The notes under the pieces are model-generated. The model was not told the DNA's origin. It did not search any database and saw nothing but the letters and a program-made list of their open reading frames with translations. Below, piece after piece: positions 50,917 to 64,000 of a stretch of 64,000 bases of DNA. Both the position numbers and the translations under genes were made by a program. Source of the DNA: Rebecca billardiae RCC1528 (lineage: Eukaryota; Protista; Haptophyta); contig OZ251229.1 in assembly GCA_965240325.2 (NCBI GenBank), positions 1,054,001-1,118,000 on the forward strand. The letters are read 5' to 3'. The stretch's first letter is position 1. Every line of letters starts with the position of its first letter.

Positions 50917-52859
50917 TAGCCTGGTCCATCCCGATTTTCGCCAGTGAAAAAGCCTTTTCGGATTTTGGGCGCCTCATTTCTCCCGATTTTTCTCGTCGCT
51001 CGTCGCGCTCGTCAAAAATCGCCACCGGCCGTCCGACGGCTCGCCGCGACGAAGGTGGGAAGGGGCTCGAGAGCCTCGACTGGACGACTGCGCCGCCTCA
51101 TGTCAGGTGTAGTGCTGGACACATCGTTCGGGTGCCCCGGTGGTGTGCGTGCACACCTTGAGCGACATGTCTGCGTTGCTTCCGCCGCCCGCGGTCCGTC
51201 GCCAGGTCGACTTCTCGCCCGACGGCGCGCGTCGAACGCTCAGCTGCTGGGTTGCGCCGCGCCTTCGAGCCGGGCCAGTTTGGGCCAGATGCGGGCCACG
51301 CGACCGCTCGTGTCGGCCTAAGCCTACCCCTAGCGTGCACTCGATGCCTTCACCAACGTTGGGCGCGCTGCGCATCGCCAACGCTTCATCCGGCCAGTCC
51401 CGTCACGTTTGCGCATGGGTCGCCCAGGGCGGCGGCAGTCGATTTGTGCTGCTCGTGGAGCTGTATGACGGGCTGGGGGCGATCAGGATGGCTCGCCTTG
51501 CGGGGCTGGGTATATACAGTTACATTGTAGTGGCTGCCGGCTGACTCCAATCCCCTGGGTGCTGCTTTACCGTCATGGCCTTTGCTGCGAGCACAAGGTC
51601 GAGGATCGTACCGTGGTCTGCGAGGCAGAGTCGACGGAGTCGTCGCTTGGAGATGGTTGAGAGCGCGCATACGTCTTCCTTGGTGTCGTGCGGCTACTTC
51701 AGCACGCAAGGCGCGCGCTCTGGCACGTGTTTGGTGTCCATGGGTGGCACATTGTGCCATTCGGGTGGCTCGGAAGCACGTGCTCGGGTGTCTTTCCCGT
51801 TTACGCGCGGTGGGCCAAGTCACCACGCACGGCCAGAGCATGTCATGGCACGCAGAGGGTGCCCATGAACGATCCCCACCCCGGTGGTGGCCGTAGGCGC
51901 ACTCGAAGCGGTCGCATCGTCACCCGCGGATCACATCAGTCCGCCGTTGAGGCTGTCGGGCGAGCAAAGACGTGCGATCTGACCCTTGGACGGGCAGCTA
52001 GAATCGCGATTATGCCTCATCTAAGGACGCACATGTCGTCGTTGTAGGCAGTACTGATGCCCCAAGTGAAAGGGCGGGCGTGGCACGCGACTTGACAGCT
52101 TGAATGACTCGATGCACGCCGCCATGGACACGCGATCCGGATCCATTGCGAACCTGCCGTGTGGCTCACGGCGGCGCGCGTTGTGCCGCAGATCGGCCAG
52201 TTGCCACGCAGGAGATGGTCTCCAGACCAGGTCCAGCACCTGACCGACTGCCGCAGGCCTGGCCGGGTGGGAGTCCGGCCCTCTTCTTGTCTGCAGGAGT
52301 GCGCGGAAGGCCAGGCGGAGCCTCGTCCGACCACTGCACCCCGAGCGCCGCACTAATCGTGCAGCCTGGTCCCGACAGCTACCCGCCTATGGCGAATATG
52401 TAACGACATAGTGGCATTGTAACTATACAGGTCCAGAACTCATACTTATGCGGGTACATTGCCCATAATATGCGGGTATAAATGGGTAATATAGTCGATC
52501 TTGCAGTAGTTGAGTACGGCCACTTGCGCACAGACCACAGCCCATCCTAATGGCCTGTACCAGGGTTCATGCTCGCCTCGACGTACGCCAATAAGTAAGT
52601 TCGTGCGTTTGGGCTCATTTCGGCTAAGTACTTACCCACATTCAGACTGACGATTCTCTATGTGTCCGTAGTTGTCCGCGGCGCGCGCGCGCACGCTCAC
52701 GACGGGCCACGGATGCGATATTTTTAGGCCGAAACTTTTGCTGCGCCCGGGCTGGGCCCATTTGTTACGCTGTTTCCGGGTGTGAGCGCGTGCCTAGGGG
52801 CCCGCGTTCATTTGGCGATAAAATCCCCGAAAGTGCTCCAGTGCGTTTGGACCAGGCTA
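50917..52859. mobile_element. Non-autonomous TIR element with TAG...CTA termini (12-bp TIR TAGCCTGGTCCA) and ATATGAG TSD; Academ-like termini
   Basis: TAGCCTGGTCCA at 50917 and TGGACCAGGCTA ending at 52859. ATATGAG at 50910-50916 and 52860-52866. Confidence 0.8.
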
Positions 52860-53088
52860 ATATGAGTGACTACAGTACGTCAGTATACATCTGTCATCTC
52901 ACGACTGGGGTAGTGGTTCGTTACGACGACTCCGGCCGCACCTGTGACGACCGCCTTCTAGGATCGACCCCCGTCACTCACAGGTCACACTGGTCTACGC
53001 GACAGTGCTGCTGCGGACGCCGACGCGCTGGCGCGCGACGGCCGCTGCTCCCGCCGGCGCGCGACACGCCACCGCCTGCCACCGTCGT

Positions 53089-55577
<2,489 letters not shown>

Positions 55578-55840
55578 CCGCGTCCCACACGATACTTCGA
55601 GGGCGGCGACACGTGCAGGCGCTGGCAGCGCTCGCGCGTCTCCCCGGTCGCAGTATTCAGACTGCGCGCGACCGAGAGAAGCTTAGAGAACTTTACCCGC
55701 AACGGCGTCTGGACCGTGGCTTTTGTTATTTCGTCAGAAATGAGAAAATGGCGATGGCGGCCGCGCAGCCTGCGAGATACTCGACACTGACTCTCGCCCA
55801 GGCCTCCGGGCGCGCGGGCCCGGTCATCCGTGCAGCAGCG

Positions 55841-58800
55841 TCAGCTCGAGAGGCCCTGCCTGCCCGTCCACGCCTTCGACTGGCCGTGCCACTTGAGCCC
55901 CGGACGCGGCACACGGCGCTTGTGCGCCCAGCCGCGTGTGCTCGCGATGTGCTCGCACTCGCGAGCGCGCTGGCCGGCGGGCCCCTTGCGGCGGTAGATG
56001 ACGACCCGCGGCGACACTTGCCTCGCGTCGATATTGCCCCCCGCCCGCGCCGCGCCGGGCACGTAGAACCTGTCGCCGATCGCCGCCTCCACGTCGATCG
56101 CGACCTGCTCGTAGCCGTCCGGGTCCCACGCCGTTGGCGTTCGCTCATGCCGGCCGATCGAGTCGGGCACGATGAGGGCGATCAGGCGCGCGCGGCAGCA
56201 GTACGCGGCATGCTCCACGAAGTGCCGCGCCTTGGCGTTTTTCTGCGGGCAGCGCGCGCGCGGCCGGCGGCACCGCGGTCGGAGCGCGCGAGGTCAGCGG
56301 CGGGCGACGCGCGCGGCGCGGCGGCGCGGGCCGCGGGCGCCGCCGCCGCAGACGCACGTTGCCAAAGGGCGGGTTGAGGCCGATGACGAGCTCGCCCGGC
56401 GGGAGGCTTTGCGGCTCGACGGCGAGCCAGTTCTCCTTCTGCATGAAGGGCGTGCCGGACTCGTTGCAGTCCAGGCACAGCTCCGCCTCGCGCGGCCTGC
56501 TGCCGAGCGGGTGCGGCAGGATGTCAATCGAGCGGAACCGGAGGCCGAGCATCGGCGCAAACTCGTTGTTCCCGGCGCAGAAGTCGACGTACGTGTCGGT
56601 CTCCGGGTTGAGGTACGGCAAGAGCATGCTCGCGACCCTCGTGAGCAGCCCCGTCTTGGTGAAGTGCCGGCCTGCCAGATGCGCGCGCGGCGTGACACCG
56701 CGCGCACCGCGGCGCGCGCGCGCGCGTCCGCGTGAGCGCAGCGCTGGGCGCGCGCGCGCGCGCCGCGCGAGGCGACACGTGCAGCGGTGCGGCGCGGCGG
56801 CTGGGCACGCACTGTAGGTCGTGTGCTTCTTGGTGTACGTCGTGAGCCCGGACAGCCAGATCCACAGCTTCGACTCGTGCTTCTTCAGCGCGAGCAGCGT
56901 CTGCATGTACGAGGTGCCCGCGAGCCGCGCCTGCAGCAAGCGCTCGACCTCGCGGCCCTTGTGGTAGGTGCCGCCCACGTTGAGGGTGCCGTGCGAGTTG
57001 ACGAGCGCGAGGGACTCCATCTCCACCGCGCTGCCGCGCTCGATCACGTCCTTCGCGCGCTCCTGCCCCACCGCCAGCGCCATCGCCACGCGCGCAGGCA
57101 GCTGCCGCTCCGGCAGCGGGATGCGACACACGTCGCTGCCGAGCGGCCGGCCGCCGTAGCTCACGAGCCCGGCCGCGGGCGCGCGCTCCGCCTGCGCCTG
57201 GCTGAACGCGTGAGGCGAGCGCAGGTGCGGCGGGACGGCGTCGCGTGCGGGCTCGCGGCCGGTCGCGTCGACGCGGACGAGCACGGCCTCGCGCGGCAGC
57301 GCACGCGCCGGCGCCACGCCCGTCGCGAGGCCCGACGGCACGCGGCTGAGCGCGACAGGCGGCGGCTCGGGCTGCGCCTGCGCCGCACTCTTGGCCGCCG
57401 CCGCCTTCTTTGGGATCTTGAAGCGCGTCTTGTCCTCCGCGCGCCCCTTGGCGGCGAGGACGTCCAGCGGCGGCGGCGCGCGGTGCGATTGGCTCGCCTC
57501 GCCCCCGGCGCCACCCGCGCACGGCGGCGGGGCAGCCGCGCCCTTGTCCGGGGCGGGCTTGGCGGTGGCCGCGCTCGGCTGGGTCGGCTTGGCGGCGGGC
57601 GGCGACTTGGCTCGCGGCCGCGCTGCGCCGGGGGACGGGCCTGCGCCCTCCGGCCTCGGCGAGTGCGGCTTGGCGCCCGACGAGCCCTCCCGAGCCACGC
57701 CGGCGTCCCGCGCGACGCCGGGCCGCGCCGCGGCCGCCGCCTTGGCCCGCGCCCGCTGCTGCTCCGGCGGCGGCTGCTTTGGCGGCGCGGAAGGGCCGCG
57801 CCGCTGCCCGTCTCGGAACTGCTGCACGCGCGCCATGATTGGCTGCTCGTCGCTGTCGCTCGAGGCGGCGGCGTCGTGCTCCGCGCCCTCCTCCGCCGCG
57901 TCCTCGTCCCCCTCGTCGCCGTCGTCGTCCGCGCTGCTCTCCGCGCTGCTCTCCGCCGAGAAGTCGCTCGTGCCGCCGCCGTCGTCGCTGCCCTCGTCGC
58001 TGGCGGACGTGCTGCCGAGCTCCGGGGCGCTCGACGCCGGGCGCGCGGCCGCGGGCTTGGCGGCCGGCTTGGGCGGCTTCACGCGCATGGCGCCGGGGGC
58101 GGCTCCGCCGCGCCTGCCGCGCGGGGTCTCGATCAGGATGCGGGCGAGCCGGCGCGTCGCCTGCTCCACACCCTCGGCGAGCAGCTCCTGCACGACGTGC
58201 GGCAGGCTGTCCACGCTGTGAGGCTTGTAGTACCCGCCCGCACCGCCGTCCGAGCCGCCGCCGCCGCCGCCGTAGTCGTCGTCCGAGTCCGAGTCCGAGT
58301 CGCCGCCGCCGCCTCCGGTGAGCGCGGCGCTGAGCGCGTCGATGGGCGAGTCGTAGACGAAGACGGGCTCGCCGTGCTCCGCCTCCGCCTCGCGCACCAC
58401 GCGCGCCGCGCGCTCGCGCTCAGGGCAGAAGAGCGCGCGGCACGGCTGCTGGATGCAGTCGGCGCGCATCGTCTCGTGCAGCGGCGTCGTGAACACGACT
58501 CGGGCCGGGTCGCAGCTCCACTGCTGCGCGATCGCGGTGGGGAGCGCGGCGGTGCCGGCGACGGCGTCGCTCGGGCGGAGCAGCCAGTTCAGCTTCACCC
58601 ACGTGTCCTCCGCCCGCGCAAACTTGGTGCCGTACTTGTAGATCTCGCAGATGAAGGCCGGGTACACGTTGAGGTCATGCGCCATCGCCAGCACCGACAT
58701 GCCGCGCGCGTACACGCGCGAGCCGTCGCTCATCCCGCCAAAGAAGGTGACGCCCTCGGTGTGGTCGCGCCCGATCTGCTCGATGACCTGGAAGGACTTG

Positions 58801-60959
58801 GCCGAGCTCAGCGCGTCGTCCAGCTGCTCGCACGCCTGCTCGAACGCCTCGAGCGTGTAGTCCGCGCGCACCTGCTCGAGCTGTGAGCGCCACCTGCTGA
58901 GCGCAAACGACTTGGCGCCGGCGAGCGCGGACGGCTTGACCATCTCGGACCATCGCACGAGCAGCCGGCGCATCGCGTCCCACGAGCCGGCCTGGTCGAC
59001 CTCCTTCCGCCACGGCACCACCGTGTCCTTCGCCTCTTCCTTCACGAGCTCCCACGTCGTCGTCACCTCCACCCGCCGCAGCCGCTCGCGCGCCGCCTTG
59101 AGCTCGTCCTGCAGCCGCTTGGACACGGAGCGCGAGGACACGGGCACGCGCTCCCCGTGCACGAGCTGCGTGGTCGAGCGCTGCACGGCGCGCGCGCGCG
59201 GCCTCGGGGGCGCGGCGTCGCGCAGCCCGGCGGCGCGGTGCCGCTCGAGCTCGTCACGCGCGGCCGCCGTCGTGCGTCTTCTGCTCGACAGCGGCAGCGA
59301 CGGGTCGAGCGCGCGCCACTTGGAGTAGGCGCTAGGGTTGATGCTCAGCTTTGAGGCGAAGTCGCACAGCTTGAGGCCGAGCGAGAGGCGGAGCGCCTCG
59401 GCGCTGTCCACGACCGCGCGCGTCTCCTCGTCGAGCTCGGCGTGGGCGGCGGGCTTGGGCGGCGGGGCGAGCGGTTGCCCGCCCGCGCGCGCTGCGGGCG
59501 CCATCGCCGCGGGCGCGACACTCGCGTCCGCGCCGCCCGCTGCGGGGCCGCGGACGCCCCCGGCCGGCTCGGCGACAGCCTCTGCGGCGCTCACGTCTCG
59601 ATCCGTCGGCTCCGCGCCAACGTCGCCGTCGTCGGCATCCATCGGATCCAACGCGCCACTCGCGCCGCCGGCCCCGTGGGCCGCGCCCGCCGCGCCGCCA
59701 CCCTGCGCGGCTGCGCCCTCCGCGCGTGTGCCGCCCGCGTCTGCCGCGCAAGCCGCGCCGCGCGCCTCGTGGGGCAGAGGCGCGGCGGCGCTGTCGCCTG
59801 TCGGCGCGGCCGGAGCGCCCCCGGCGCTGAGGTCCGCAGCGCCGCTCTCAGCGCCGCGAGCGGGCGCGGCGCACTGGGCGGGGGGAGCAAGCGGCTCGGG
59901 CGCGGCCGACTGCGCCCCCTGCGCTGCCGCTGCGGCCGTGCGCGCGGGCACCGCCTGGGCCGCACCCGCCACCACGGGCGCCGGCTGCGAGTTGGGTGCG
60001 AGGAGGGAGGGGACACAGGCTGAGAGCGCCGCCCGAGCCTCAGGCGGCGCGCTGCTGCTGCTCCCCGCTTGCAACGTCGGCGCCGATGGCGTCACTGGGG
60101 ACAGGCGCGGCTGCGCCAGCGGCTGCGCATGCCGAGCATCGAGCGGCTGCGCTCGGCCCACCTCCCTGCTGGGCGTGGGCAGGGGTCGGAAAGACGCGGG
60201 TGCACCCGAGCCGGGCGCCACCGCGTCGCTCGGCGCGGACGCCGGCGCACACGCGGCACAGGCACGGTTGTGCCGAGTCAGCGCTGCGGCGGGCGGTGCG
60301 GCTGCGGCTGCGGGCGCGGGCGCGGCAAGGGCACCGTCCACCGCCACCGGTACAGCCTGCGCTCCCGGCGCGCGCTCAGAGCCGAGCGGCGCGGCGGCCT
60401 CGGCGGCAGGCGGCGCGAGGCCGCCCGCTCCATGCCGCCTCAGCACGACGGTGCGCGCTGGCGACAGGCGTGAGTGCGCAAGCGTGGGTGCAGCCCCCTC
60501 GCCCAGCGGCCGGGAGGCGCCCACCACGGTTGGTGCCGCCAGAACGGCGCCAGAGGCTGCGCCCGGATCCACCCCAATCGCCAAAGGCTCGGCCAGTGCC
60601 AAGGCTGGCGCGCTGGCGCGGTTGTCCCACACCGCCTCTGCTTTGGCATCGGCGACCGCAGCGCCCGCCGCAGCGTGCATCGCGGCCGCAGGCGACGCGA
60701 GTAGAGGCGCAGCGGTAGGCGCCGAGGCGGTGCCCTGGCTCAGGTCGATGCCGGCGCTGTCCGTTACTGGCGCGTCGGCAGCCGCCACCGGGTCCTGCAG
60801 GCCGCTCGCTCGAGCTGCGTCCGTGCCATCCTGCGATGGAGCCGGCACGCGGAGCAGCGCGAGCTCGCGTCCTGGTTGGCCAGCCCTCTGGGCGGCGCGC
60901 AGCAGTGCGTGGATGGCGAGCTCCATGTGGGCGCCTGGCGCGGCCGATCCTGACGCCAT
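55841..60959 (-). CDS. Large chromatin protein: HTH, WSD/WHIM-like helices, BAH domain, C-terminal EDM2/DM2-type Rossmann methyltransferase-like domain; introns 56672-56812 and 56243-56357
   Basis: Spliced C-terminus reads TTYSRHFTK...YVDFCAGNNEF...ELVIGLNPPFGNKNAKARHFVEHA...LIALIVP. BAH-like YPAFICEIY...WVKLNWLLRPSD...RADCIQQPC. HTH-like LRLSLGLKLCDFASKLSINPSAYSKW. Confidence 0.85.
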
Positions 60960-61072
60960 CGCGAGCGGCCCTCGCACGCGAGCGCGGCGCGCCAATGCCA
61001 AGCGGCGGGCGTCAGCGGTGCCGCGCTTTCGTGAGGGCGGCAGTGCGGCACCAGCCCGAGCGGGAGCGCACG

Positions 61073-61769
61073 ATGGCGGCGAACGACGCGCAGCCGAGTG
61101 ATAGAGTCTTGTGGGTCGGGGATCTCGATCCCCGGGTCCAAGAAGACGAGCTCTTGGTGTGCGCATGGCGACTTGATCCACCTCTGTGCGCTCGCGCTGA
61201 TACCTCGGGTCACCACCCCACGCACCCCCCGCCCCGCGCGCGTCCACTCGGGTGCGCGCCCGCAGGCCGCGTTCAAGCAGTTTGGAGATGTGGAGAAGGC
61301 TGTCCTTGACAGCTGTCCCATCACGGGGCAGTCGCGAGGGTGGGGCTTCATTCAGTACGCCGATCCTCGCGTGGCGGCCCACGTGTATCACGTGATGTCC
61401 GAGAATCTCTTCATGCTCTCCTACCCTCCGCGGCCAGTGCGCGTGCGCTTTGCCGAGTTGGGGTACAGGCGAGACCCGACGCCACTGTACGAGCAAGTGG
61501 TCAGGGAGCCGACGACGGCGCACTGGGCAGCACCGAACACGCTGCAGTGGACCCAGGCGCTCGAGCTGCGCGAGCTCGCCCTTACTCAAGAGTCCGAGAG
61601 CGCCGCGGTCAAGCTGCTACACAAAGAGGAGCGGGCTAAGATGCACCAGCGGCATGTCGAGCAGGTGAAGGCGGACCAGGGCTTGCTCGCCCAGATCCAC
61701 AGAAATCAGAGGGAAGAGACGACTGCTGGACGGCAAGACTACACGGTCAGCAATATCGATGATGCCTGA
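61073..61769 (+). CDS. RRM + NOPS-like + coiled-coil protein (AIPP1/EDM3- or DBHS-like); intron 61157-61265
   Basis: RNP2 LWVGDL, RNP1 RGWGFIQY, then FMLSYPPRPVRVRFAE, HWAAPNTLQWTQALELRELA and a charged helix. Confidence 0.85.
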
Positions 61770-61975
61770 GGCGCGCGAACTGCGCTCACTCCGACGGACA
61801 GACTGCTGGTGGGCAGTCACTGCCTTATTCCGATGCCGGTCCGCCGCCGCACGCCGGTCGCCAAGGCCCAAGCTACTGTAGTTTGCCTGTTTGGCGGGCT
61901 GACCGGCCTGACCGGCGCCTGCAGAGCAGCCAGAAGCCGGGCAAAAGGTGAAGATGCTGACAGATCCAGATGCTG

Positions 61976-61979
<4 letters not shown>

Positions 61980-62050
<71 letters not shown>

Positions 62051-62058
62051 CATACACA
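61980..62058. repeat. (TA)n/(TACA)n microsatellite
   Basis: Read directly from the sequence. Confidence 0.95.
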
Positions 62059-62192
62059 TGACGAGGTTGATGATGCATAACAACGGCGTATAGCAGTTTA
62101 TCTCACGAGAGTTCTGCTCAGGCTCGTCGTCCGCCGGAATATAATGATCGTGATCGTGGCCCGTGACGTCTCGGCGTGTGCGCTGAGATCAA

Positions 62193-63056
62193 TCACATGC
62201 CCATGATGAGATGGCGCGTGAAGAAAGAGATGGTGTCTTTCCACGCCGCTTCGGCCGTCGCTTCGTCGTAAGGTGGAACGCCAAGCTTTGCCTGCCGTTC
62301 CTCGAAAGACTCGAACGGCGCTGGGCTGTCGTTCATGAACGCGTGCCCCACCTTGGGGTGCACCGTGACAATTGCACGCGTGTTGCCTGCTTCCTTCAGC
62401 ACTGCCTCCAGCTTGCGCGCAGTCTCCGGGTCGGAGAAGCCGGCCATCGCGTCGGCCTCGCCAAAGTGGCCACGGACGGGCTTGGCAGAGAGCTGTTCTG
62501 GCTTGAACAGGTCGAAGTTGACGCCGTAGAAGGCCGCGGCGCACGCAATGTCGGCGCTCGCCGCCGCGCCACCAAGCGAAAGGGCGCCGCCCATGCAGAA
62601 GCCGATGATGCCGACCTTTGAGCAGCCCTCTTGCTTGAGGAACGCGGCGGCGTGGCCAATCTCAGCGACGGCCGCGGGGAAGTCCAGCGTGTCCATCAAG
62701 TGGCTCGCCTCCTCCGCGTCCACGCCCACCTTGCCCTTGTACAGGTCTGGCACGAGCACGCGAAAGCCTCTCATTGCCAGCCGCCCGGCGTGCTCACACA
62801 CCTGCGGCGTGACTCCCCACCACTCTTGCACGACGATGACGGCCGGCGCACCCTTCTGCCCGGCGACGTAGCCCGGGATGTCCCTGCCGGGACCGAAGCT
62901 CACCTTGTCCATGTTCTTGCCTGCCGCCTTGGACGCGGCAAACATGAAGCGAGCGTCGCCACGGCGAGTGCCACCACACGCGCTCGGGGGACACCTGGCG
63001 GCGAGGAAGCGCGCGGCGGATGGCGGAGGCGCACACCGGCGTGCAAGGGTAGACAT
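62193..63056 (-). CDS. Dienelactone hydrolase (carboxymethylenebutenolidase) family, with probable organellar presequence
   Basis: VVQEWWG, VPDLY, GFCMGG, HFGEAD, GHAFMN; Arg/Ala-rich N-terminus. Confidence 0.9.
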   Translation of the reverse strand: MSTLARRCAPPPSAARFLAARCPPSACGGTRRGDARFMFAASKAAGKNMDKVSFGPGRDIPGYVAGQKGAPAVIVVQEWWGVTPQVCEHAGRLAMRGFRVLVPDLYKGKVGVDAEEASHLMDTLDFPAAVAEIGHAAAFLKQEGCSKVGIIGFCMGGALSLGGAAASADIACAAAFYGVNFDLFKPEQLSAKPVRGHFGEADAMAGFSDPETARKLEAVLKEAGNTRAIVTVHPKVGHAFMNDSPAPFESFEERQAKLGVPPYDEATAEAAWKDTISFFTRHLIMGM

Positions 63057-63837
63057 GCTACGTGGCAGACCAAAGCGCCGGCTGGCTGTCGTCTGGCAAC
63101 GAGCTGGTGCAACTGCAGCGCGTGATTGCTCGCGGCCGTCCCAGGCCGGCGAACAGCCAGGGGTGTTCCCCCCAAGGAGTCTTAAAAACCTTAAAGACTC
63201 CTTGTTCCCCCAACCTCCGCTGTGCAGGAGCTCTGGGGACAATCCCGGACACAGGGATGGTTTTCACTTTTCAGTTTCACCGAGACGTCGTGGCAAGGGC
63301 CGTGCATGATTGTGCTCCCTCTCTCCCCTGGCATCAGGCATGTGGCTCGTTCGGCCTGTCGGACAGTCGGTGTAGGCTGTATGTAGTGGCCGCGCCGAGC
63401 CGTACGACCCGCCACAGGCTGCAATGCCATTGTCAGCGTAAGTCATTCGTGATATAGATTGCGCGCCGCGACTGATGGCGGCATCCGCCAAATGTCGGGG
63501 CCCGGTGCCGGCCCCGGCGGGGCTGGGGGCGATTCCGCGGCCGACTCGTGTCCGTGACTCGTCCGACTCAGACTCACAGACTAGGTCTAGTGCCGCCAGA
63601 TCGGCGCAGCCGACGCGTGGGGCTATCGAGGTTCGAGAGCGGCCTGGGCGCGCACGTGCCCAGCGATGTGCGCCCCTCGCCAGCAGCGCCACTCCGCGCT
63701 CGAGGTGGCGGTTGCGGGCGGTGGCAGCGCGGCTGTGACCGCCGTGACCGCCGCGGCCCCCGCCAAGCGCGCGGGGTGGGATCGGCCCCCGCCAAGCGCG
63801 CGGGGTGGGATTCGGCTGAGCGCGCTCGGCAAGGTCG

Positions 63838-63915
63838 CTACTCGGCAAAATCGTCGGCCAGCTCCTTGTCGAGCTCGGCCTCGAGGGCGGCGGCATCGTC
63901 CGTAGAGAGGTTCGC
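63838..63915 (-). CDS. Last exon of a gene that continues beyond the window (ANLSTDDAAALEAELDKELADDFAE*)
   Basis: CGCAG acceptor at 63916, a GC-rich intron running to the window edge, and a TAG stop at 63838. Confidence 0.6.
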   Translation of the reverse strand, partial: ANLSTDDAAALEAELDKELADDFAE

Positions 63916-64000
63916 CTGCGGTGCGCGCGGCGAGCGCGCGCGCGCGCCGTGCCGGTGAGAGCGCGCCGGGCGAGGAGCGCGCAGGGCGCGCGCGCTACGA

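Follow-up and report, generated by a model that had tools for sequence, protein, structure and literature searches.

A predicted EDM2-type methyltransferase-like protein and a putative truncated DBHS paralogue encoded head to head in a probably haptophyte-like alga

Two divergent genes and the question they raise

Does a pair of divergent algal genes represent a compact version of the plant ASI1-AIPP1-EDM2 (AAE) system, or are the two genes merely neighbors? The question arises from a 64,000-nt stretch of contig OZ251229.1 (positions 1,054,001 to 1,118,000 of the forward strand), which we refer to as the window. Near one of its ends, a region of 68% G+C holds two oppositely oriented eukaryotic genes. 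The one on the minus strand (the large gene) encodes a protein that ends in a methyltransferase-like domain; the one on the plus strand (the RRM gene) encodes a small protein with a single RRM. An earlier note, made from the letters of the window, had read them as a physically linked chromatin and RNA-processing module driven by a shared promoter. We found that both genes are real and splice cleanly (Table 1). However, the reading as a two-gene AAE module is unsupported. In our view the alga, which is high in GC and probably haptophyte-like, probably carries here two independent nuclear genes whose head-to-head position arose by chance. Two things keep the locus interesting, namely an architectural variant of the EDM2-type family that is new and lies outside plants, and a truncated DBHS paralogue.

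The C-terminal domain of the large protein

On the evidence of a family alignment and a structural model of a relative, the C-terminal domain of the large protein is predicted to be an EDM2-type class-I NPPF methyltransferase-like domain. The strings on which the earlier note had based the same assignment (RHFTK, VDFCAGNNEF, GLNPPFG and LIALIVP) are all present in the window, and the assignment itself was borne out by a weak family match, the alignment, the fold of one homologue and the architecture of another. The weak match is a precomputed annotation of PF26055 (Mtase_EDM2) on P0002, an automatically called open reading frame (ORF) of the window. The domain belongs to a protist family, to whose members it is 36-49% identical. 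Exon 2 of the large gene, used to scan metagenomes, matched 16 loci (E 5e-17 to 6e-6). Eight of the 16 encode the domain without introns, with E-values of 1e-31 to 5e-36 (L011-L017), 6e-19 (L025) and 4e-9 (L024) and an identity of 30-38% over 129-325 residues. The exon 3 region was matched to relatives by tblastn over residues 1487-1620. In alignment A1 the identity to the L015 homologue is 49% for exon 2 and 39% for exon 3, and conserved blocks run across both exons: YTT(Y/F)SRHFT, DTF(I/V)DFxCGxN, FD, VIGLNPPFG, EFVEHA, RxIxLIxP and FYxPG. Motif IV (VIGLNPPFGN) and the cofactor loop (VDFCAGNNEF) both lie in exon 2, and NPPFG and the Gly of the loop are nearly invariant in A1. The loop follows the pattern DFxxG(x)N; it reads DFCAGNN in the window protein and DFACGxN in most of its kin, and the acidic residue after strand 2 is intact.

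The fold points in the same direction. An AlphaFold2 (AF2) model of the L015 member has a Rossmann-type core with a predicted local distance difference test score (pLDDT) of 80-96. Its three best shape matches in the ESM-Atlas are plant clusters in which 100% of the members carry PF26055, and they are named ENHANCED DOWNY MILDEW 2, PHD-type zinc finger and DM2-domain protein. Between 179 and 219 residues were aligned, with template modelling (TM) scores by query of 0.52, 0.52 and 0.46. The top two of these matches include much of the helical lead-in to the domain, whereas the matches to generic methyltransferases mostly do not.

Several points weigh against the assignment. The TM-scores to the EDM2 clusters are moderate, and the fold was tested on the L015 homologue, which is 37-49% identical, and not on the window protein itself. 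At the level of sequence, the tie to plant EDM2 consists of the single precomputed match, to which structure and architecture are added. In addition, hmmscan returned no PF26055 row for ORF P0002, for the exons or for four homologues, the PHD-bearing L025 among them. The Pfam copy used there gave no PF26055 even for a protein of EDM2 architecture, either because it does not contain this model or because the matches fall below the filters, and its negatives for Mtase_EDM2 are not trustworthy. These Pfam scans were run on the separate exons and on ORF P0002, which reads through intron 1; no methyltransferase family was reported in either. A PDB sequence search with the methyltransferase-domain exon 2 found nothing meaningful, and word-indexed homologue searches, for which exon 2 of both genes and the tail of exon 1 served as queries, returned only ORFs of the window itself.

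Arabidopsis EDM2/ELP1, which combines PHD fingers with Mtase_EDM2 (PF26055), resembles the window protein in its C-terminal class-I methyltransferase-like domain with an RHFT lead-in and an NPPFG motif IV. In both cases the domain forms part of a large nuclear protein of chromatin type, in which long linkers are disordered. In contrast to EDM2, the window protein shows a weak BAH-like region, no NSD-type PHD fingers were found in it, and its host is a haptophyte-like alga rather than a plant. Among solved structures, the folds nearest to the L015 model are the RNA methyltransferases KsgA, Erm, HEN1 and MnmM (Foldseek E 5e-6 to 1e-4). The identities are only 12-17%, however, and the rRNA adenine-N6 dimethyltransferases KsgA and Erm, as well as HEN1, lack the RHFT helical lead-in and the chromatin modules and have different, well-defined substrates. 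KsgA and Erm, but not HEN1, act on adenine N6 through a comparable motif IV.

Is the domain an enzyme? The NPPF site, the Gly of the cofactor loop and the acidic residue of strand 2 have been kept across distant protists, which favors a working amino-methyltransferase. Its predicted activity has the N6 of adenine, in RNA or in DNA, as the obvious candidate substrate. In such a scheme the large protein would be a chromatin-type protein with a probable BAH reader, long disordered linkers and the EDM2-type domain at its end. It would be tethered to marked chromatin, where the domain would methylate an exocyclic amino group; the likeliest target would be the N6 of adenine, either on nascent RNA or on DNA. 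Another use is also conceivable, namely as a module that binds nucleic acid or S-adenosylmethionine, as plant EDM2 may do.

The latter thought leads to the rival explanation that the domain is catalytically inert in this organism and serves for binding or as a scaffold only. The atypical motif I, with DFCAGNN in place of the usual GxGxG loop, would agree with this. So would PMC7529245 and PMC3632883, in which the plant domain is described solely as methyltransferase-like, with no activity reported. Nevertheless, conserved as they are across distant protists, the three features show the pattern expected if purifying selection had acted on an active site, and the closest solved folds are those of active RNA methyltransferases. 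We therefore consider an inert domain unlikely, while leaving it an appreciable chance.

The EDM2 methyltransferase-like domain has so far been discussed as a plant feature without demonstrated activity. EDM2 is not among the proteins mentioned in the Iyer/Aravind survey of eukaryotic adenine methyltransferases. Here it is predicted in a haptophyte-like alga and in marine protist sequences, with the NPPF site conserved. If this is true, the EDM2-type domain would be an old eukaryotic chromatin-linked enzyme module, and protists might offer simpler systems in which to find its substrate.

A probable BAH domain and variable reader modules

The large protein probably has a BAH domain in front of the methyltransferase-like domain, but this is not established. 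Of the BAH-like domain claimed before, what stood is a weak Pfam match and a lead from a feature search. The Pfam BAH match (PF01426) covers 90 of the 121 profile positions at an E-value of 0.014, and its 15.7 bits fall short of the cut-off of 30.8. In a language-model feature search of the ESM-Atlas with residues 690-900, the best named matches were all BAH clusters; the top score of 0.89 counts as a lead only by the calibration of the tool. On the other side, a PDB sequence search with the BAH region gave no match, and a single-sequence AF2 model of residues 505-905, from the helix-turn-helix (HTH)-like region to the BAH-like region, reached a pLDDT of 38 and was unusable. In the Pfam scans the 1382-aa exon 1 matched no PHD family, and the rows for HTH_Tnp_1 and ARM_CPL3 in the large protein were too weak (E 0.1-0.4) to count as evidence.

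Relatives of the large protein carry other modules in this place. The protein at L025:8696-10609, on a metagenomic contig of 68% G+C, has PHD, PHD_NSD and PHDvar_NSD fingers N-terminal to a methyltransferase-like domain of the same family. This combination of families is that of the plant EDM2 clusters and amounts to the full EDM2 architecture, in a probably algal organism. A second relative, at L015:1-3606 (67% G+C), is at least 1202 aa long and has the EDM2-type domain at its end. Its N-terminal part gave a weak UBA match, and by eye it contains Tudor-like and BAH-like stretches. When the N-terminal 800 residues of the window protein were compared with the L015 protein by BLASTP and phmmer, no shared reader region was found. 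In a further relative, L022, Pfam found nothing in ten ORF pieces from the upstream part.

The modules preceding the domain thus vary: they are BAH-like in the window, NSD-type PHD fingers in one relative and none confidently recognized in another. As the N-terminal parts of the window and L015 proteins have no detectable similarity, reader modules appear to have been swapped among members of the EDM2-type family.

The small protein and the DBHS family

Judging from alignments, profile matches and a phylogenetic tree, the small protein is an aberrant, fast-evolving DBHS-family paralogue that is predicted to have RRM2, a degenerate NOPS and a coiled coil, without RRM1. Exon 2 of the RRM gene matches Pfam RRM_1 at 1.6e-5. 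When this exon was compared with the PDB by phmmer, the RRM2 domains of PSPC1, SFPQ and NONO ranked first. The alignments pass through FLLTTTPRPV, and that with NONO extends to query residue 127. Searched exhaustively with HMMER, 1.84 billion representatives yielded 128 matches, of which 19 reached 1e-10 or lower. Most of the best matches align over at least query residues 1-130 and cover the RRM, NOPS and the coil, and the alignment starts at residue ~100-150 of proteins of 320-440 aa, which have two RRM_1 matches and then NOPS. The short matches that seemed to have one RRM are fragments of two-RRM genes. The single RRM of the window protein aligns to RRM2 of the DBHS proteins.

Source names were looked up for 30 of the 128 match clusters. 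Among the kin that carry a name, the protein of Chrysochromulina tobinii is called "paraspeckle component 1", and those from metagenomes "non-POU domain-containing octamer-binding protein". Records without a name came from Phaeocystis, Cyanoptyche, Mesostigma, Chlorokybus, Hemimastix, Hanusia, Rhodelphis, Blastocystis and Nematostella. As far as sequence can tell, the demonstrable kin of the small protein are two-RRM NONO/PSPC1-like proteins of haptophytes and other protists. A family profile built from the window protein and 13 kin (alignment A2) matches the crystal structures of the DBHS proteins PSPC1, SFPQ and NONO at 1e-39 over positions 1-169, that is, across RRM2, NOPS and the coiled coil; other RRM proteins are matched at 3e-22 or weaker. 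The earlier note had pointed out FML..PRPVRVRFAE followed by HWAAP, and both are present in the small protein. Its comparison with the RRM2-NOPS-coiled-coil layout of DBHS proteins was supported by the best PDB matches, the two-RRM kin and the family profile.

Two observations weigh against this membership. Pfam NOPS was not reported for the window protein, and the nearly invariant Trp of NOPS is Leu here. Even so, HWAAPNTLQWTQALELREL lines up in every column with HFAQPGTLEFDFALKWREL, the corresponding stretch of kin in which Pfam does report NOPS. Compared with NONO, PSPC1 and SFPQ, the small protein can be aligned over RRM2, the FLL..PRPV linker, the HF/W-A-x-P..L(E/Q)(F/W) core of NOPS and the subsequent helical region. 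It differs from them in its length of 195 aa, in the altered NOPS with its subthreshold Pfam score, in the lack of RRM1 and in its very long branch. No RRM1 was found from position 52000 to the window end at 64000, either by tblastn with 15 DBHS proteins or with an unfiltered RRM1 hidden Markov model (HMM). In a maximum-likelihood tree, the proteins of Chrysochromulina and Phaeocystis share a clade to which the window protein does not belong, and the branch leading to the window protein measures 2.2 substitutions per site.

RRM2, NOPS and the coiled coil form the obligate-dimer core of DBHS proteins, as in the matched structures. The canonical aromatics of RNP1 (RGWGFIQY) and RNP2 (LWVGDL) are kept in the small protein, and in this it differs from vertebrate RRM2. 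It seems from these features that the small protein probably binds RNA as a homo- or heterodimer. Its partner would be either a second copy of itself or a canonical two-RRM DBHS protein from another locus of the genome, and its role might lie in nuclear RNA handling.

In the course of the search, DBHS-type proteins with the order RRM1-RRM2-NOPS-coil were seen in haptophytes, glaucophytes, streptophyte algae, cryptophytes, Hemimastix, Rhodelphis and Blastocystis. The paraspeckle-protein family is widespread in protists, and these proteins, together with the one-RRM paralogue, show that it reaches beyond animals.

The start of the large gene and the width of the gap

The two ATGs that the earlier note had placed 113 bp apart are literally there. 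The one at 60959 is doubtful as a start, because the codon signature of the gene is lost upstream of ~59650. G+C at third codon positions (GC3) stays at 0.92-1.00 in all 150-nt windows between ~59600 and the intron, and reaches only 0.72-0.84 in the interval 59650-60959. In the latter interval a comparable third-position bias was found in none of the frames on either strand (best values 0.76-0.96, versus 0.90-1.00 further down). Its translation is 32% Ala, 12% Pro and 11% Gly. In total, the first ~440-485 codons of the large ORF lack the signature. All six frames are open at such a G+C content, and the mechanical ORF even extends into the RRM gene; therefore an open frame is no evidence of coding here.

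On codon statistics, the in-frame ATGs at 59642 or 59504 are likelier starts than that at 60959. With either of them, the gap from coding region to coding region becomes ~1.4-1.6 kb rather than 113 bp, and this is probably its true size. The head-to-head orientation stands. The proposed 113-bp bidirectional promoter, which depends on ATG 60959, is made doubtful by the same statistics.

The two genes also differ in codon bias, with a GC3 of 0.77 for the RRM gene (61266-61769) compared with 0.92-1.0 for the large gene (56813-59600). The overall G+C of the RRM gene is 0.61-0.69, and its bias is much weaker than that of its neighbors (GC3 0.92-1.0). This weak bias may reflect low expression, fast evolution or a different origin.

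Chance adjacency or a two-gene module

The earlier note had proposed to test whether the two genes also lie together in relatives. The pair was absent at every informative locus, whether approached from the DBHS side or from the methyltransferase side. On the DBHS side, the large protein finds no match in five metagenomic contigs of one lineage (L002-L006), nor in four Chrysochromulina-parva-like contigs (L007-L010), where another gene, of 1835 aa, lies upstream. On the methyltransferase side, upstream DNA is available at L018-L020, L022 and L023, which belong to one lineage of 50% G+C, and at L025. None of these six loci has a match to the window RRM protein or to the 15 DBHS proteins at an E-value of 0.01. 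The remaining EDM2-type loci are uninformative, being short, running off the 5′ end or beginning within the gene.

The adjacency of the two genes is most likely due to chance. Two considerations weigh against this. The relatives used for synteny are distant (30-44% identity), so that an ancestral linkage could have been lost in them, and one would not often expect, a priori, to meet an RRM gene beside an EDM2-type gene.

The main competitor of chance adjacency is the proposal that the pair is a compact analogue of plant AAE. In this proposal, a fusion of BAH and EDM2-type domains would recruit the adjacent RRM protein to nascent RNA and steer polyadenylation or termination over heterochromatin, and both genes would be expressed from a shared promoter. 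It can draw on the presence of an EDM2-type domain and a probable BAH within one protein, and on an RNA-binding protein with a dimerization and scaffold core encoded immediately upstream in divergent orientation. DBHS proteins couple transcription with RNA processing, and a fast-evolving paralogue is compatible with a new partner. As in AAE, modules of the BAH-like, RRM and EDM2 types occur in one neighborhood. However, the BAH-like region of the window protein shares a chain with the methyltransferase-like domain and not with an RRM, no PHD was found, the small protein is of the DBHS type, and the linkage of the pair is not conserved in any informative relative, from either side. The promoter hangs on the doubtful ATG, and the codon usage of the two genes is unlike.

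In addition, no evidence obtained here ties the small protein to AIPP1/EDM3 (At1g05970). No land-plant record occurs among the 30 looked-up clusters, and the streptophyte-algal matches are proteins of 438-495 aa in which the match starts near residue 110, as in the two-RRM kin. No paper combining AIPP1 with NOPS was found in a literature search. The earlier note had likened the layout of the small protein to that of AIPP1/EDM3; AIPP1 is described in PMC7472560, PMC10852260, PMC9910501 and PMC9292364 solely as an RRM protein that bridges ASI1 and EDM2. The BAH of ASI1 has been reported to bind SUVH6 rather than to serve as a generic reader (PMC9910501), which makes the analogy loose. An AAE-like module in this alga would be interesting if true, yet the evidence gathered does not back it, and we consider it very unlikely.

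A related reading supposes that the divergent one-RRM DBHS paralogue was recruited as the RNA-binding partner of the adjacent BAH and EDM2-type protein. If true, the two would make up a chromatin-to-RNA-processing module analogous to AAE outside plants; nascent transcripts would be handled jointly by a chromatin reader, a putative adenine methyltransferase and a dimeric RNA scaffold. We give it a very small chance.

Least probable of all is that the one-RRM layout is an artefact, with an ordinary two-RRM DBHS orthologue whose RRM1 exon was missed or lies in an assembly gap: automatic gene calls in metagenomic relatives do split the two RRMs into two ORFs and all named close kin have two RRMs, but the RRM1 searches of 52000-64000 were negative, exon 1 already provides the ATG and the first strand of the same RRM, an identical sequence exists in an independent Logan contig, and the long branch lies outside the haptophyte DBHS clade.

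Gene models and surroundings

The coordinates of both genes are collected in Table 1. Read from ATG 60959, the large protein would have 1620 aa. The strongly coding part of its exon 1 encodes an HTH-like stretch, a helical region, the BAH-like region, acidic and Ala/Pro-rich linkers and also the helical lead-in to the methyltransferase domain. Removal of the two introns joins TTYS to RHFTK and NPPFGN to KNAKARHF in phase. The spliced RRM gene encodes 195 aa and a stop codon.

Table 1. Positions of the features of the two divergent genes in the window.
Feature	Position	Strand	Length and boundaries	Remarks
Interval between the two ATGs	60960..61072		113 bp	ATG 60959 (minus) and ATG 61073 (plus)
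Large gene, doubtful N-terminal ORF extension	59643..60959	minus		disordered head, or else untranslated or promoter DNA
Large gene, exon 1	60959-56813	minus	1382 aa	as read from ATG 60959; splice-phase check
Large gene, strongly coding part of exon 1	56813..59642	minus		GC3 0.92-1.00
Large gene, BAH-like region	58404..58709	minus	residues 751-852 counted from ATG 60959	Pfam match below the cut-off
Large gene, intron 1	56672..56812	minus	141 nt, GTGCGT...GGCAG, phase 1	in frame; automatic gene call P0002 reads through
Large gene, exon 2	56358..56671	minus		RHFTK, motif-I-like VDFCAGNNEF, SIDI, motif IV VIGLNPPFGN
Large gene, intron 2	56243..56357	minus	GTGCGT...CCGCAG, phase 0	relatives uninterrupted at the matching point
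Large gene, exon 3	55841..56242	minus		second half of the methyltransferase-like domain (HFVEHAAYCC, RLIALIVP, FYVPG), basic tail, stop codon
RRM gene, exon 1	61073..61156	plus	28 codons	start codon and RNP2 strand LWVGDL; aligns with the first RRM2 strand of relatives
RRM gene, intron	61157..61265	plus	109 nt, GTGTGC...CCGCAG	splice-phase check
RRM gene, exon 2	61266..61769	plus		rest of the RRM (RNP1 RGWGFIQY), FMLSYPPRPVRVRFAE, NOPS-like HWAAPNTLQWTQALELREL, helical/coiled-coil tail, stop codon
NOPS-like HWAAPNTLQWTQALELREL	61521-61577	plus		within exon 2 of the RRM gene

In the Chrysochromulina-parva-like contigs, the 1835-aa gene has no Pfam match and precedes a canonical DBHS gene on the same strand, with an unchanged order in all cases (L007:746-6253, L008:2426-7933 and one further locus). 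In the window itself, the pair is flanked by two minus-strand genes, of which that at 53000-55268 resembles DnaK-type (mitochondrial) HSP70 and that at 62193-63242 a dienelactone-hydrolase-like enzyme; no connection of either with chromatin or with RNA processing is apparent. About 210 bp beyond the stop codon of the RRM gene, at 61978-62046, there is a perfect (AT)n microsatellite of ~70 bp in otherwise very G+C-rich surroundings.

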